From the sequence record MT028491.1: 64,000 nucleotides of DNA. One strand, written 5' to 3'. Each line of letters begins with the position of its first letter. Positions within the stretch are counted from its first letter, which is position 1. The translations under genes and the position numbers were made by a program. The notes beneath the pieces are model-generated. The model saw only the letters and a program-made list of their open reading frames with translations, made no database searches and was not told the DNA's origin. Below are positions 1 through 6,034 of the stretch, in pieces.

Positions 1-1
1 T

Positions 2-313
2 ATCGAAAAAATTGCGAGTGAAGAATTTTATATTCCTTACTACTCGCCTGTAGATAACAAGATGCATCGATATTTTGTTGACTTAATGGTCAAAACAAAA
101 ACTGGCGAAATTTGGATTATTGAAATTAAACCAGATTCGCAAACTAGACCTCCAAAGAATAGTAAAAGAAAAAAGCAAACTACTTTTCTTCAAGAGGCTC
201 TAACCTATGAGATAAATAATGCAAAGTGGACGGCTGCTAAAGAGTTTTGCCGTAAACGTGGATATAAGTTCTTGATTGCAACAGAATTAGATTTAAAGAA
301 CGTTAGGAATTAA
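2..313 (+). CDS. gp4: head completion nuclease (T4 gp4-like), 5' truncated by the window edge
   Basis: Frame is open from base 2 (IEKIASEEFYIPYYSPVDNKMHRYFVD...IEIKP...N.AKW.AA..FC); typical TnsA-like gp4 motifs; lies next to gp2. Confidence 0.9.
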   Translation: MEKIASEEFYIPYYSPVDNKMHRYFVDLMVKTKTGEIWIIEIKPDSQTRPPKNSKRKKQTTFLQEALTYEINNAKWTAAKEFCRKRGYKFLIATELDLKNVRN

Positions 314-315
314 TT

Positions 316-975
316 ATGGCGTCAATTTTTGGTTCAACTACAACCATTCGTGACATTGTTGAAGATGCTCTTCGCTCCAATGTTAATCTAAGAGATAGAA
401 ATCGCAAAAGCATGTTGTGGCTTGCCGAACGTGCTAGACAGATGAATTCAAGAGCAAACAATGCATCAACCTTTATTCGTGAAGATGGTCACACACTATT
501 GAATAAAGGTAATGAAGGTATCGGTAAAATGTTCCTTTATTTCTATGATGCTAAACATAAAGCAACACTACCATATTATGACCAAGTGCCATGCATATTC
601 GTTCTTGAACGTTATAAGGATGGTTTCTTAGGTCTTAACCTACACTATCTTGCTTATCGCGAGCGCGCCTTTTTGCTGGACGCTTTGTTTGAATTAGAAA
701 ACAATGCAAAGCTTCCTGAGAACAAAAAGTTGCGTTTGCGTTATGCTGTCTTGAAGACAATTAGCCGATCAGAATTGGCTATGCCTTGTATCAAGAGATA
801 TCTTTATTCACAAGTTAGAAGTCGTTTTGTTCGTGTGCCTGCCGATGAATGGCACATTGTTGCAATGCTTCCATATCAGGCTTTCCGCGATGGAAATGGC
901 AAGACTATTCCGGTTCGAAAGGTTTGGGCCGATTCCAGACGTGCCGCCAAAAAGAGACAAAGAAAAGGAAAATAA
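316..975 (+). CDS. gp2: DNA end protector protein (T4 gp2-like)
   Basis: Motifs GKMFLYFYDAKHK..LPYYD..P, GFLGLNLHYL, CIKRYL..QVRSRF. Confidence 0.92.
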   Translation: MASIFGSTTTIRDIVEDALRSNVNLRDRNRKSMLWLAERARQMNSRANNASTFIREDGHTLLNKGNEGIGKMFLYFYDAKHKATLPYYDQVPCIFVLERYKDGFLGLNLHYLAYRERAFLLDALFELENNAKLPENKKLRLRYAVLKTISRSELAMPCIKRYLYSQVRSRFVRVPADEWHIVAMLPYQAFRDGNGKTIPVRKVWADSRRAAKKRQRKGK

Positions 976-1517
976 TGTCAAACATTGATGAATTCCTATC
1001 GGCACTGTCGAAAGGTGGAATATCCAAATCTTCTAACTTTTCGTGCATTGTCACATCACCAACCGGATCAGCCGACGAAATGCGCGACCTTACAATGCGT
1101 ATTGAAGCGGCTGATATTGCCGGTCGAAACACTACAATCTTGGAAGATACTACAGGTGGTTTTCCAACAAAGGTTGTGGTTGGTTCAACAATGAACGAAT
1201 TACCCTTGAGCATTATTCTTTCCGAAGATTTGAAAGAAAAAATCTTTATGGAAAAATGGCAAGACCTTGCTACAGGAAGTTATCGATCTGGAACAATATC
1301 TAAATACATGTATAATCCGGGTTATTATAACGATTATGTAGGTACTGTTTTAGTCTATGTCAAAAATGATATGGGTGATACTACTTACGAAATCGAATAC
1401 GAAAATGCTTTCCCTGCATTGATTGGTAATATTTCTTATTCATGGGAAAACGGACAAGCAATTGCAAAGCTACCTGTGACATTTATATTCAAAAAGTTTA
1501 TAGACAAAACTTTATAA
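975..1517 (+). CDS. tail tube / baseplate tube-initiator family protein (gp19/gp54-like)
   Basis: ATG at 975 overlaps the gp2 stop (TAATG); MFMEKWQD, YYNDYVG, YENAFP..IG.ISYSW, KLPVTF.F resemble the T4 tube-protein fold. Confidence 0.7.
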   Translation: MSNIDEFLSALSKGGISKSSNFSCIVTSPTGSADEMRDLTMRIEAADIAGRNTTILEDTTGGFPTKVVVGSTMNELPLSIILSEDLKEKIFMEKWQDLATGSYRSGTISKYMYNPGYYNDYVGTVLVYVKNDMGDTTYEIEYENAFPALIGNISYSWENGQAIAKLPVTFIFKKFIDKTL

Positions 1518-1536
1518 AGGACTGTGACTTAATACT

Positions 1537-2256
1537 ATGGCGTTACCAAAACTTAGAGTACCTGAATATTTTACTAAACTACCTTCCAATGGAAAAGAAA
1601 TTAAGTTTAGACCTTATCTTGTTGGTGAACAGAAAACACTTCTGGTTGCTATTGAAAGTAAGGACGTAAAAGAAATCTATAACGCAATCTTGAACATTAT
1701 TAACGAATGTATTTTGACTCCGGGCATCAAAGCTGAAAAGCTGGCGTCCTATGATGTTGAATGGCTGTTCATTAAAATGCGCGAACATAGCGTCGGTGGG
1801 CAAATCGCACTTATGCATAATCATGTGGTTGATGAAGAGGAATTTGAAGTCCCTGTTAAAGTCAATCTTGCAAATGTCAAGTACGAAAATCCAAATGTAA
1901 ACAATAAGATTTTGCTTGAAGAAGAAACTGGAATTGGTGTTGTTCTCAAGCATCCAACTCTAGAAATGTCTCTTAAGATATCAGACTTCCAAGAGGAAAT
2001 GTCTCAAACAGAGTTGACATTCAAATTTGTTGAAGAATGCATTGAAAGCATTTTTGATAAAGATGAAGTCTATACAGATTTTCCAGATGGTTATGTTCAT
2101 GAATTTGTCAATAGCATGACCGAAACACAAAGACAGAAAGTAATGGCATTCTTCAAAGATGCTCCATATGTCTATCTAGACATTTCTTATATCTGTCCAA
2201 AGACTAATAATACCATCAATAAACGCTTGTCGGGTATTACCGATTTTTTTATCTAA
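1537..2256 (+). CDS. gp26: baseplate hub subunit / assembly chaperone (T4 gp26-like)
   Basis: MALPKL..PEY..KLPS.GKEIKFRPYLVGEQK.LL.A.ES, YDVEWLFIKMR..SVG, C-terminal L.GITDFF. Confidence 0.88.
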   Translation: MALPKLRVPEYFTKLPSNGKEIKFRPYLVGEQKTLLVAIESKDVKEIYNAILNIINECILTPGIKAEKLASYDVEWLFIKMREHSVGGQIALMHNHVVDEEEFEVPVKVNLANVKYENPNVNNKILLEEETGIGVVLKHPTLEMSLKISDFQEEMSQTELTFKFVEECIESIFDKDEVYTDFPDGYVHEFVNSMTETQRQKVMAFFKDAPYVYLDISYICPKTNNTINKRLSGITDFFI

Positions 2257-2432
2257 CCCAATCCCATGATAGTATCTTCAATTATCTCACTGTGAACTTT
2301 ATTCTAGTTCATGATGAAAAAATTGATCTTGTTACTATTGAAAATATGATTCCATGGGAAAGGGAATATTATATTATGAGTTTGAACAAGCGTATTATGG
2401 AACAGAACCAAAAGGCTCAAAATAATGGCTAA
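2244..2432 (+). CDS. gp51: baseplate hub assembly protein (T4 gp51-like), probably expressed by -1 frameshift from gp26
   Basis: The -1 frame after T TTT TTT (2244-2250) reads FFYLTQSHDSIFNYLTVNFILVHDEKIDLVTIENMIPWEREYYIMSLNKRIMEQNQKAQNNG*; ENMIPWER is a gp51 hallmark; there is no ATG at the start of the homologous region. Confidence 0.75.
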   Translation, partial: FFYLTQSHDSIFNYLTVNFILVHDEKIDLVTIENMIPWEREYYIMSLNKRIMEQNQKAQNNG

Positions 2433-4323
2433 TGAATTGCCAAGGCTTTCTAATACAGATGCTATCAATTCGGGTGATTTTTCAGCCGAATTTAGCAAAC
2501 TCATGGCTGGTTCGTTTGCACGTGCCAACAAGACAATGACGGCTATTAATGCTCGATTCATTGATGACACGATCAAAGTCACTGGCGACATGATTAAGGT
2601 TGATCAAGAGGCATATCAAAAAAGCGTTGATGACCTAAAAAAAGCCTTGACAAATTCGACTTCTATTGGAAATCAACCTTTGAAAGTTGAAATTACCAAC
2701 TACCATTTCATTACCGATAAGCTGGATAATCTTATCGGTAAGATTGACCTTTTGTCACTCAATCAAAATACTCCTATCGTTGACGGAACTCCAACACCAG
2801 AAGAAAACCCAACCAAACCAAAGCCAAAGAATCCAAAAGAAAAGAGACAGGACGAAAACGAAAAGAAAGATCGTTCTTTATTCTCAAAATTTATGTCTTT
2901 CCTTCAACTTGCCGACAATAAGCGTAAGATGAAGGGTGGTGCAATGGATGAAGATTGGCTTAAAAAGGGTGGTGCGCTTGCTTCATTGCTTCTAAATCCT
3001 AGCGAACACGTAAGCGTTATGAGTCGTATGCTTGTAGGAAGACTACTTCTTAAGCTTAATACGTCTCTGTTCTCACTGATCAATGGTATCATTGGAGCAA
3101 CATTCTCAACTCTTGGTGGGCTTACGGCTGTAATCATCGGATCAGTTCTTTCAACTACAATGTTGAAAGCCGGTATTGGTATGCTTGCTAGGGTGTTTTC
3201 CAAAATCAATCCATTAATGTTGATCCTAACCGGATTAGGAACAATGGCCTATGATGCTGTTACTGGTTGGATGAACACAGAAGGTTCAATGGGTGATAAA
3301 GCCATTGGAGCTTTGAAATCCGCTTTCCTAGAAGGTGGTGTTCTTAAGATGACCGGTAAATGGGCCGCAATGGGCGCTACAATTGGTATGATAGGTGGTC
3401 CTGTAGGAAGTCTTGCCGGTGGTATTATCGGCTCTGTAATCGGCCTTGTATTGGGTTTGGTTGGTGGAGATACGATTGCTGCTTGGACTTCGGCTGCATG
3501 GGAATCTCTAAAAGAACTTCCGGGTATGATCTGGAACGGAATTGAGGGGGTTTATAACTGGACAAGACAAAAAGTTCAAGACCTCATTGCATGGTTTCAA
3601 TCTATTCCAGATACCGTTTCAGCTAAGATTGATGAATGGGTGTCTTCTTCGGAAGCATGGGCTAATGAAAATATCATTAATCCTGTTATGACTAAAATCG
3701 ATGAATGGTCTGTGAAGGTACTTGCTTTCTTCCAACCAGCTATCGATTTATTTAACAATGTTTCAAATATGTTAAATGGTATTTCTATTGAGGGTATTCA
3801 AAATACTCTACAAGAATCCATTGATAAATTTTATGAAACATTCGATTGGATCACTGGATCAATTACACGTTGGTTTGATGAAAAGATTGGACAATTGAAG
3901 AACCTAAAAGATCGTATTTTAGGTATCTTTAATTATGGTGAAACTACAGAAGAACTTGACAAAATTGAACCTGTAGAACTTACACCAGAATCAAGAGAGC
4001 GCATGAGAGCTAGAGCCGCAAATATGAATACGTCTCTAGATAGATCATCTTCGGATGGAAACATGCTATTGGATAGCATGAATCTTTATGCGGAAAAAAA
4101 TAAAGAAAGTACCCTATCACGTAATTCCGGTATTAAGCCCGGAACAGAAGCATTGAATGACTACAATGCAGGAATTGCCGCTGCTGGAATTGCAGCTAAC
4201 TTTGTAGATAATTCAAGAACAAGTGTTAATAACACCAGTGTTACAAACGCTTCTAGCACTAGTGTCAATACTCCATTAGGGCCAACGGATAGACAGGGAC
4301 AAAAAGCTAATTTAGGTTATTAA
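2425..4323 (+). CDS. tape-measure / baseplate hub-like protein (gp29 position)
   Basis: 632 aa; Gly/Ala-rich hydrophobic middle; Trp-periodic helical repeats; C-terminal low-complexity N/S/T (VDNSRTSVNNTS); follows gp26/gp51. Confidence 0.65.
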   Translation: MANELPRLSNTDAINSGDFSAEFSKLMAGSFARANKTMTAINARFIDDTIKVTGDMIKVDQEAYQKSVDDLKKALTNSTSIGNQPLKVEITNYHFITDKLDNLIGKIDLLSLNQNTPIVDGTPTPEENPTKPKPKNPKEKRQDENEKKDRSLFSKFMSFLQLADNKRKMKGGAMDEDWLKKGGALASLLLNPSEHVSVMSRMLVGRLLLKLNTSLFSLINGIIGATFSTLGGLTAVIIGSVLSTTMLKAGIGMLARVFSKINPLMLILTGLGTMAYDAVTGWMNTEGSMGDKAIGALKSAFLEGGVLKMTGKWAAMGATIGMIGGPVGSLAGGIIGSVIGLVLGLVGGDTIAAWTSAAWESLKELPGMIWNGIEGVYNWTRQKVQDLIAWFQSIPDTVSAKIDEWVSSSEAWANENIINPVMTKIDEWSVKVLAFFQPAIDLFNNVSNMLNGISIEGIQNTLQESIDKFYETFDWITGSITRWFDEKIGQLKNLKDRILGIFNYGETTEELDKIEPVELTPESRERMRARAANMNTSLDRSSSDGNMLLDSMNLYAEKNKESTLSRNSGIKPGTEALNDYNAGIAAAGIAANFVDNSRTSVNNTSVTNASSTSVNTPLGPTDRQGQKANLGY

Positions 4324-5885
4324 TGCCAAAAATCCATTATGATGAAGATGAAGGTTATAAGGGTAATCCGCTCTTAAGACATGCCGGAGTCAAAATCGAA
4401 GTAACTAAAGAACAACTTATTGAAAAGGCTAAATGTAAATACGACATTCATTATTTTATGAATAACTATGTGTTCATTGAAACACCTAGAGCCGGTATTG
4501 AACAGTTTAAGCCTTACAAATATCAGAAAAATTTGACAGACATTGTTCAAGATGAAACACGTGTTATTGTCAAAATGCCTAGACAGGCAGGGAAATCGAC
4601 AATCCTTGCCGTCATTATTGCACACTATCTGATTTTCAATAGCAACTTCTCAATTCTAATTGCCGCGCATACACGTGAAGCTGCAATTGAATTCATGGAA
4701 CGTATCAAGATTGTTTATCAAAATCTTCCATCTTGGCTTCAATGGGGAGTCAAGAAATGGAACGTTCATTCATTCCGTCTTGAAAACGATAGCCGCGTAC
4801 AGTGCGTTGCTACTTCTAAAGGTGCCGGTCGTGGTTCGTCACGTAACCTTGTTATTCTTGACGAATATGCGTTCGTTGATCAGAACGTTGCAGATGCTTT
4901 CTATGCTTCGATATATCCTACAATTTCCTCAAACCCAACATCAAAATTGGTTATTATTTCTACTCCTAACGGCCTAAATCACTATCATAAAATGTGGGAT
5001 GACGCCGAAAAGGGAGAATCAGAATATCAACCATTCTCAATCAAATGGGATGATGTTGATGGTCGTGATGATGAATTTAAGCGTAAGACCATTTCTGACT
5101 TTGGCTTAGAACGTTGGGAAGTGGAATACGAATGTAAGTTTGCTGGTAAAACAGCATCGCTTATCAATGCCGTTAAGCTAACTTGTCTTGTATCCGATAA
5201 ACCCCAATATCAAGACGATCATGGTTGGACAATGTTCAAACAGCCTGAGAAGGGTAGGACATATGTTATAACCGTTGATACAAGCCGTGGTAAAGGACTG
5301 GACTATCACGCCTTCGTTGTCACTGACATTTCGGAAGAAACGTTTAAAGTCGTTGCTCATTTCCGAAATGATTCCCTAGACACTTTGGCTTACCCTCAAG
5401 TCATTTACAATGCGGCAATAGCGTATAACAATGCATATTTGCTCATTGAATTGAATGATCTTGGAAAACAAGTTTCGGATATTCTCTATAACGAATTCGA
5501 ATATGAAAACCTGTTAGGAACCAAAACACGTGAAAAAAGACAGGTTCTTGTTCCGTTTAATATTTCATCTATGGGTGTTATGACTTCCAAGGTGACAAAG
5601 CGTCTTGGTTGTTCCACACTCAAATCAATGATTGAACGTGACAAGCTTATTGTTAGTTCACGTGATATCATTGCTGAATTGTCGAACTTTGTCCTTGTCG
5701 GAAACAGTTATGAAGCCGACAAGGGTTTTAATGATGACTTGGTTATGTGCCTTGTCAATCTGGCATGGGCATCAACTCAACCGGTCTTTTCAGAACTTGC
5801 CGAAAATTTCTCATTGAAAGATGTCTATAGAGACAATGAATTCTATGATGAAATGCCGGTTGGTTTTTTTGATGATGGAATGTGA
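4323..5885 (+). CDS. terL: terminase large subunit (T4 gp17-like)
   Basis: YKGNPLL N-terminus, Walker A PRQAGKST, Walker B ILDEYAF, nuclease motifs VDTSRG and DDLVM. Confidence 0.97.
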   Translation: MPKIHYDEDEGYKGNPLLRHAGVKIEVTKEQLIEKAKCKYDIHYFMNNYVFIETPRAGIEQFKPYKYQKNLTDIVQDETRVIVKMPRQAGKSTILAVIIAHYLIFNSNFSILIAAHTREAAIEFMERIKIVYQNLPSWLQWGVKKWNVHSFRLENDSRVQCVATSKGAGRGSSRNLVILDEYAFVDQNVADAFYASIYPTISSNPTSKLVIISTPNGLNHYHKMWDDAEKGESEYQPFSIKWDDVDGRDDEFKRKTISDFGLERWEVEYECKFAGKTASLINAVKLTCLVSDKPQYQDDHGWTMFKQPEKGRTYVITVDTSRGKGLDYHAFVVTDISEETFKVVAHFRNDSLDTLAYPQVIYNAAIAYNNAYLLIELNDLGKQVSDILYNEFEYENLLGTKTREKRQVLVPFNISSMGVMTSKVTKRLGCSTLKSMIERDKLIVSSRDIIAELSNFVLVGNSYEADKGFNDDLVMCLVNLAWASTQPVFSELAENFSLKDVYRDNEFYDEMPVGFFDDGM

Positions 5886-5999
5886 TCAGCCAATAAAACG
5901 AATGGCAGAAAACACCAAGGCTGCAAAGACAGGAAGAACACAAAGAGATACGATAAGAGTTTCCTTTGCGTCACGACGATTGTAACAAATAGCCTTCAT
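5886..5999 (-). CDS. small membrane peptide (37 aa)
   Basis: Translated by hand as MKAICYNRRDAKETLIVSLCVLPVFAALVFSAIRFIG*; SD AAGGGAG; has its own promoter; abuts the terL stop tail-to-tail. Confidence 0.55.
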   Translation of the reverse strand: MKAICYNRRDAKETLIVSLCVLPVFAALVFSAIRFIG

Positions 6000-6034
6000 A
6001 ACAAAATCTCCCTTTAGGATTATCAACGTTTATA

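Follow-up and report, generated by a model that had tools for sequence, protein, structure and literature searches.

A candidate -1 frameshift site joins gp26 to a gp51-like extension in Ochrobactrum phage vB_OspM_OC and other T4-like phages

The gp26 junction and its two reading frames

We analyzed a stretch of 64,000 nucleotides (nt) from the genome of Ochrobactrum phage vB_OspM_OC (hereafter, the window), whose bases 1-6000 correspond to positions 62001-68000 of record MT028491.1 with 100% identity. The phage is a T4-like myovirus of 227.7 kb, assigned to the Kyanoviridae in that record. The genes at the locus follow the order gp4, a gp2-like gene, a tail-tube-family gene, a gp26 homologue, an open reading frame (ORF) of 46 amino acids (aa), an ORF of 632 aa and the large terminase (Table 1). 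At the end of the gp26 homologue, the zero frame overlaps a -1 frame that encodes a segment resembling gp51. We propose that a -1 frameshift of the lambda G/GT or P2 E/E+E' type within gp26 yields a short and a long chaperone form, a reading to which we assign a probability of roughly 0.78.

The final codons of gp26 read GAT TTT TTT ATC TAA, and the slippery heptamer within them lies in the register expected of a -1 shift site. The -1 frame is closed by a TAA at 2220-2222 and is then open from 2223 to the TAA at 2430-2432, comprising 62 codons when counted from 2244. Its first ATG, at 2346, is codon 35, and the sole canonical start ahead of it is a GTG at 2292 (codon 17 of the -1 piece), from which the deposited ORF phiOC_p072 begins. 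The 20 nt before this GTG hold no purine-rich Shine-Dalgarno-like motif, unlike the corresponding regions of the neighbouring genes. A standard tandem slip at the heptamer would produce 238 + 60 = 298 residues. Direct reading of the locus agreed with the original prediction of a frameshift at this site, which had named the heptamer near the end of gp26, a 62-codon -1 frame shut upstream, a first ATG deep inside that frame with only an internal GTG lacking an obvious Shine-Dalgarno motif ahead of it, and a 298-residue product should the shift occur.

The zero-frame protein and the -1 piece were searched separately, never as one joined sequence. The former matched PF12322 (T4_baseplate) over residues 9-238 at 2.9e-50 and 171 bits (gathering cut-off 24.5), as well as positions 5-232 of the 282 in phrog_150 ('baseplate hub'). 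The latter matched phrog_634, the gp51 family ('baseplate hub assembly catalyst'), at 1e-14 from the first Phe codon of the heptamer onward, upholding the gp51 likeness claimed for it earlier, and also matched positions 227-277 of phrog_150. Since gp26 leaves phrog_150 at position 232 and the -1 piece spans 227-277, a single profile runs colinearly over the two frames, with the hand-over at the heptamer. The phage genome contains only one gp26-like place and only one gp51-like place, so that a long form could arise here only through recoding.

The two overlapping frames lie between the tail-tube-family gene and the probable tape measure gene, the position required of a G/GT-type pair, and the end of the -1 extension overlaps the start of the 632-aa ORF by 8 nt. 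We regard this ORF as the probable tape measure based on its position, its size and weak profile matches to the tape-measure PHROGs 1272 and 28 (3.8e-8 and 1.9e-5, respectively). A BLASTP comparison with T2 gp29 recovered only a short Pro/Lys-rich match (6e-4), with no direct homology. Relatives carry an ORF of 500-700 aa in the same position, and these downstream ORFs belong to different PHROGs.

Table 1. Features at the gp26 junction and its surroundings, in window coordinates. AF2, AlphaFold2; pLDDT, predicted local distance difference test.
Feature	Position	Strand	Basis
gp2-like DNA end protector, neighbour	316..975	+	phrog_429 at 4.6e-49; annotated phiOC_p069
Tail-tube-family gene (gp54/gp19-like), directly upstream of gp26	975..1517	+	phrog_45 'tail tube', 9.6e-25
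gp26 homologue, zero-frame 239-aa product	1537..2256	+	PF12322, phrog_150; AF2 model pLDDT 90
Weak 5-bp hairpin abutting the T run, terminator-like, judged incidental	2229..2244	+	One match versus 0.7 by chance
Slippery heptamer T TTT TTT, proposed -1 shift site	2244..2250	+	Read directly; X_XXY_YYZ in the gp26 frame
-1 frame extension, gp51-like C-terminal segment, 60 sense codons + TAA	2250..2432	+	phrog_634, phrog_150
gp26 zero-frame stop TAA	2254..2256	+	One codon (3 nt) past the heptamer
Interrupted hairpin, predicted	2268..2339	+	-17.5 kcal/mol, z = -3.9; starts 17 nt past the heptamer
Deposited ORF phiOC_p072, 'hypothetical protein', GTG start, 46 aa	2292..2432	+	Record annotation
Probable tape measure (gp29 analogue), 632 aa, deposited as 'tail protein'	2425..4323	+	Weak profile matches, position, size
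Large terminase subunit, neighbour	4323..5885	+	PF03237 and PF17289

Conservation of the junction

Two metagenomic lineages, L011 and L012, are close relatives of the phage, with gp26 identities of 72% and 70%. Across the three lineages, the 16 nt GATTTTTTTATCTAAC spanning the heptamer and stop do not vary, in contrast to the synonymous sites on either side, which vary freely, and the identical 16-nt junction recurs in four independent assemblies of close relatives. Neither metagenomic lineage has the GTG at 2292, and candidate starts are placed differently from lineage to lineage. In these relatives, the protein sequence read in the -1 frame is conserved starting at the heptamer; gene callers had left a gap of 168 nt here. 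Variable columns at positions 1, 2 and 3 of the -1 frame numbered 4, 3 and 8 in the part between heptamer and GTG, and 10, 9 and 32 downstream of the GTG. The third-position bias upstream of the GTG indicates that codon constraint starts before any start codon. A product started at the GTG would miss these earlier codons, among them two that match 81-89% of relatives. As deposited, phiOC_p072 is probably not an independent gene.

We collected 80 IMG/VR loci with a gp26 profile and added isolates, which after deduplication gave 93 distinct junctions that form 31 clusters at 60% gp26 identity (median pairwise identity 43%). All 93 junctions carry T6[T/C/A] in the same register, as the original prediction had anticipated for T4-like phages; the six T's are followed by C in 68, by T in 22 and by A in 3. 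The stop lies exactly 3 nt past the heptamer in 83 of the 93. The codon before the heptamer ends in T throughout (AGT, TCT, GAT, AAT or GCT), and the first Phe codon is TTT in 93/93, compared with a TTT share of 70% among Phe codons elsewhere in these genes. T7 runs are scarce on both strands of the window, with 24 observed versus 80 +/- 13 in dinucleotide-preserving shuffles, and this scarcity of T7/A7 runs suggests a general avoidance of slippery homopolymers in the genome. Given both this rarity and the in-register heptamer at every homologous junction, the heptamer at the junction is more than chance.

The extension comprises 56-70 codons and aligns without gaps from the heptamer, both in the 93 loci and in the 31 representatives. 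Many of its columns are common to more than 80% of the sequences, some of them ahead of any start codon. The anticipated lack of a gp51 start held for vB_OspM_OC, its close relatives and most representative lineages, the first ATG lying at least 33 nt inside the extension in 22 of the 31; it did not hold in 8 of the 31, which have an ATG no more than 18 nt from where the heptamer begins, often overlapping the stop. No in-frame natural fusion was found among cyanophage-type loci in the 93 junctions, and none of 33 database matches was a gp26 homologue longer than 254 aa.

The same site is present in Aeromonas phages PX29, Assk and ZPAH1 (Straboviridae), Vibrio phage K491, Stenotrophomonas phage Mendera, Caulobacter phage Cr30 and Sinorhizobium phage phiN3. 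Five phages lie beyond the set of 93, namely Cr30, phiN3, Assk and ZPAH1, with T6[T/C], and Rhizobium phage RL2RES, with T6G (TTTTTTG). Taxonomically, the site was found in the Kyanoviridae (cyanophages and the phage studied here), several Aeromonas Straboviridae, a Vibrio phage, the rhizobial phages of Innesvirus and Emdodecavirus, Menderavirus and Cr30. In Cr30 (L102 3324-3572), RL2RES (L103 3348-3776) and phiN3 (L104 3346-3765), an extra ORF of 82-142 aa sits between the gp51-like extension and a large tape-measure-like gene; no such ORF occurs in vB_OspM_OC or in the cyanophage records examined.

As controls we used phages of the T-even type with a separate gp51, namely T2, RB49, CC31, JD18, JM10, vB_YenM_P8, CF1 and one IMG/VR contig (L110). 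They were drawn mainly from GenBank records, a search of IMG/VR with T2 gp26 having returned near-identical loci only. In these genomes, gene 25 follows gene 26, and gene 51 is separate, divergently transcribed and located upstream of genes 27, 28 and 29. None of the eight has an in-register heptamer at the gp26 end. The encoded Phe-Phe or Phe-Leu is kept; 7/8 use TTC for the first Phe, preceded by a GAA, GAG or AGT codon, and in L110 TTT TTT follows GAG, which limits the T run to six and puts it out of register. Overall, loss of the heptamer coincides exactly with the long form having its own gene.

The 249-aa gp51 of T2 matched PF12322 over residues 1-201 (4e-55), phrog_150 over positions 13-280 of 282, and phrog_634 over residues 147-246 (8e-24). 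Profile comparison with hhalign also placed its residues 200-244 against positions 2-47 of the extension alignment (E 1.3e-4, probability 54%). These PF12322 and extension matches imply that T-even gp51 is a gp26 paralogue with the extension in one frame. Judging by the alignments, the junction in T2 gp51 falls at the residue that corresponds to the heptamer position, and the two arrangements are colinear.

A CxxC pair occurs near the gp26 C-terminus in PX29 (L096 ~4655-4672), Mendera (L003 ~4203-4220) and T2 (L097 5023-5040), and T2 gp51 has another CxxC at residues 85-88. These pairs could be part of a zinc ribbon. At the corresponding place in the window (2190-2215), the first Cys alone is kept (Cys-Pro-Lys-Thr).

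Competing explanations and local context

Several observations weigh against a frameshift that yields a chaperone pair. The codon constraints at the site give a log10 P of about -32 with loci taken as independent, a value that is overstated because the loci are phylogenetically related, and that is still extreme with 18-31 lineages. Phe-Phe is conserved at the protein level too, and this partly accounts for the T run. Downstream of the site, folding of three close lineages revealed no conserved stimulatory RNA structure. In 45 of the 93 junctions, an ATG lies 12-15 nt past the heptamer start, often in a TGATG-type stop-start overlap, and in those lineages a free small gp51 made by re-initiation is possible. 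Enterobacter phage fGh-Ecl02, a Kuttervirus (L114 1238-2193), has a third arrangement: its gp26-like end (GAA ATT TTC ATT) lacks a heptamer, and the next ORF, of 49 aa, has its own ATG overlapping the stop and an MPW motif like that of the gp51 extension. Based on this phage, the gp51-like segment may work unfused in the Ackermannviridae. Finally, the paper describing vB_OspM_OC makes no mention of frameshifting or mass spectrometry.

The predicted fold of gp26 belongs on the same side of the balance, as its likeness to known tail assembly chaperones was non-significant. A fold search with the whole, confident AF2 model (pLDDT 90) against the PDB returned nothing at E <= 0.001, and a gp26 profile found nothing meaningful among PDB sequences. 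Searching BFVD with the model retrieved mostly baseplate-hub or unnamed proteins of diverse myoviruses, with no named chaperone. The N-terminal domain (residues 1-91, pLDDT 89) consists of two short strands and three helices. Its top two PDB matches were both chains of 2ob9, the HK97 tail assembly chaperone, with a Foldseek probability of 0.75-0.89 and a template modelling (TM) score of 0.37-0.53, followed by the small proteins 3fgx, 5ir0 and 3klu; TM scores in the set overall were ~0.4-0.57, at non-significant E-values of 0.1-0.9. The model is thus only suggestive of a tail-assembly-chaperone fold in this domain.

The best-surviving alternative, which we nevertheless consider unlikely, is that no frameshift takes place and the small ORF is translated alone, from the GTG at 2292 or by termination-reinitiation, giving a free gp51-like peptide of 46-60 aa. 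This matches the depositors' annotation, and the ATG beside the stop in nearly half of the junctions (45/93), often overlapping it, would serve such initiation; in fGh-Ecl02, where the ORF has its own ATG and there is no heptamer, it seems to be the only route. However, neither vB_OspM_OC nor its close relatives have a conserved start, the GTG lacks a Shine-Dalgarno-like motif, and both conservation and the -1 codon bias begin at the heptamer, before any start. Independent initiation also leaves unexplained the invariant T at the preceding wobble position, the invariant TTT, and the loss of the heptamer in phages with a separate gp51, and in T-even gp51 the segment is fused to a gp26-type domain. 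It is possible as an additional route in lineages with a start beside the stop.

Somewhat less probable still is transcriptional slippage, in which RNA polymerase would add one U within the T7 run and a minority of mRNAs would encode the fusion. The site is indeed a homopolymer run, and slippage is a documented route to such products (reviewed in PMC5009743). However, 68 of the 93 relatives have six T's followed by C. Six T's are shorter than the runs that give efficient slippage by bacterial polymerases. Moreover, the conserved feature is an in-register heptamer beside a stop, as in P2 (PMC3091744), rather than run length.

We further considered RNA signals other than a shift site. One terminator-like pattern exists at 2229-2250, and the T run might accordingly be read as a weak terminator or attenuator (the hairpin at 2229-2244 followed by U7) or as a U-rich ribosome-loading site. 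U-rich tracts can aid initiation. Both versions are very improbable. The pattern occurs at chance level (1 found, 0.7 expected), and we rejected it as an intrinsic terminator: L012 retains the hairpin pairing, but it could not be discerned in L011 and had no counterpart in the cyanophage junction contexts examined. A terminator here would cut off the tape-measure gene, and a loading site needs a nearby start codon, which is missing in most lineages. The last alternative, that the two frames reflect an assembly or sequencing indel or a decaying gene whose true form is one fused ORF, can practically be dismissed: although homopolymer runs are error-prone in some sequencing chemistries, the two-frame layout with its stop recurs in 93/93 independent junctions from isolates and metagenomes of many studies, none fused in frame, which excludes the indel that the original prediction had allowed for.

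The larger predicted hairpin, at 2268-2339, is specific to vB_OspM_OC and was rejected as a conserved stimulator of frameshifting, since a consensus fold of the three close lineages did not contain it; folding of 2200-2300 gave z = +0.3. This hairpin encloses the GTG at 2292 and, if formed, would further disfavour initiation there. Upstream of the heptamer, a G-rich purine motif (mostly GAGGG/GAAGG) starts at a distance of 8-16 nt, mostly 12-15, in 82 of the 93 junctions, and GAGGG or GAAGG stands at a fixed distance in 75. In E. coli dnaX, the -1 frameshift has an upstream Shine-Dalgarno-like stimulator. The spacing of the motif in the relatives likewise suits stimulation of a -1 shift, and it might be such a stimulator; the same bases also encode a conserved Glu/Lys-Gly, and their conservation may be at the protein level. 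In contrast to dnaX, no conserved downstream hairpin exists here, and vB_OspM_OC has TCGGG at the place of the motif.

Further observations concern the surrounding genes. Orthologues of the tail-tube-family gene in close relatives contain PF23849 (Phage_TTP_2). The large terminase gene directly follows the tape-measure-like gene and overlaps it at 4323 (ATGA-type). At this place PX29 and K491 have a gp3-like or tail-tube gene, a difference that points to local rearrangement of the T4-like module order. Some deposited names look wrong, with phiOC_p071, the PF12322 gp26 homologue, called 'baseplate wedge protein' and phiOC_p073, the probable tape measure, called 'tail protein'. Upstream, among p066/p067 (L001), a 187-aa gene is noted as 'T4-like gp7', although its counterpart in L012 contains PF11246 (Phage_gp53). 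Between the gp2 and tail-tube-family genes, L011, the closest metagenomic relative, carries a 229-aa NUMOD3-domain ORF (800-1489) resembling a homing endonuclease, an insertion missing from the window and from L012. A tRNA scan of the window found none.

Proposed mechanism, known systems and implications

In the proposed mechanism, most ribosomes translating gp26 would stop at the TAA at 2254 and release the 239-aa protein. A minority, with two Phe-tRNAs on the TTT TTT of 2244-2250, would slip back by one base, and after this tandem -1 slip both anticodons would re-pair perfectly on U UUU UUU. These ribosomes would then read 60 codons of the -1 frame before reaching the TAA at 2430, giving a rare 298-aa long form with the layout of T-even gp51, that is, a gp26-type domain with a C-terminal extension of ~50-60 residues. 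Acting together, an abundant short form and a rare long form would chaperone the downstream-encoded tape measure and the hub, and, by analogy with lambda and P2, neither would end up in the virion. T-even phages would obtain the same two products from the paralogous genes 26 and 51. We infer the occurrence of the slip, its rate and the chaperone role of its products from sequence and from analogy with known systems. At the level of sequence, the site, the extension, the start, the position and the T-even comparison all came out as a G/GT-type pair predicts, which supports the pair as originally proposed.

The closest documented precedent is the E/E+E' pair in the FETUD tail operon of the myovirus P2, where a -1 shift on TTTTTTG without a hairpin produces E (91 aa) and E+E' (142 aa) (PMC3091744). 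The gp26 system shares with it a myovirus genome, a U-rich heptamer, the lack of a conserved downstream hairpin, a short extension and a position just before the tape measure. As in P2, only the heptamer and a nearby stop are conserved at the site, with no shared downstream RNA structure, and within the gp26 family RL2RES has exactly the TTTTTTG of P2. The two differ in that E is much smaller than gp26 and in that the zero-frame stop lies one codon past the heptamer in most gp26 members.

In lambda, the -1 frameshift producing gpG and gpGT was described by Levin 1993 and Xu 2004, 2013 and 2014, as reviewed in PMC5009743. There, the tape measure is bound by both G and GT, and the tube protein is recruited through the T part; the two proteins, present at a G:GT ratio of about 30:1, are both missing from the virion (PMC5009743). 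Similarly, the gp26 pair is encoded between tube and tape-measure genes, and T4 gp51 is needed for assembly yet absent from the particle (PMC3004832), as are G and GT. The two systems share no detectable sequence homology, however. The short form here is a 239-aa PF12322 protein instead of a small chaperone with a single domain, the extension adds no more than 60 residues, the heptamer is made up entirely of U, and binding of the tape measure and tube by the gp26 pair is putative.

The T4 and T2 proteins belong to the same PF12322 family, and the long form would share its predicted architecture with T2 gp51. They differ in that their two forms are separate, divergently transcribed paralogues, and in that gene 26 lacks a heptamer and has gene 25 after it. 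Hub assembly in T4 requires gp51, which does not form part of the particle, and both gp26 and gp51 are counted among the hub assembly chaperones (PMC3004832), all of which fits a short and long chaperone pair for a gp29-type tape measure.

A 2016 review stated that the tail-assembly -1 frameshift is conserved in long-tailed phages "except T4" (PMC5009743). Our search of the non-subscription literature found no paper linking gp26 or gp51 to frameshifting, and the GenBank and RefSeq records examined annotate the -1 segment as a small separate ORF or not at all. The mechanism is thus known in kind, while its presence in the gp26/gp51 family and the interpretation of T-even gp51 as a fixed long form appear to be new. 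We lean slightly toward the view that the gp26/gp51 frameshift is common and probably ancestral in the wider T4-like group, and that the T-even phages duplicated the gene and fixed the long form as gene 51.

If this ancestral reading is true, the T4 proteins gp26 and gp51, without a clear role since the 1970s, would be the missing G/GT-type chaperones of the tape measure, and T4 would no longer be an exception to the tail-assembly frameshift rule. If the frameshift reading holds, the two proteins would have a testable function, as short and long chaperones of a gp29-type tape measure. Annotation would need fixing in hundreds of T4-like genomes, where the segment is a gap of ~170 nt or a small ORF with an arbitrary start; in vB_OspM_OC, the 'baseplate wedge protein' phiOC_p071 and the 'hypothetical protein' phiOC_p072 would become one recoded gene. 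More broadly, a recoding signal and a gene duplication would represent alternative solutions to the need for two products.

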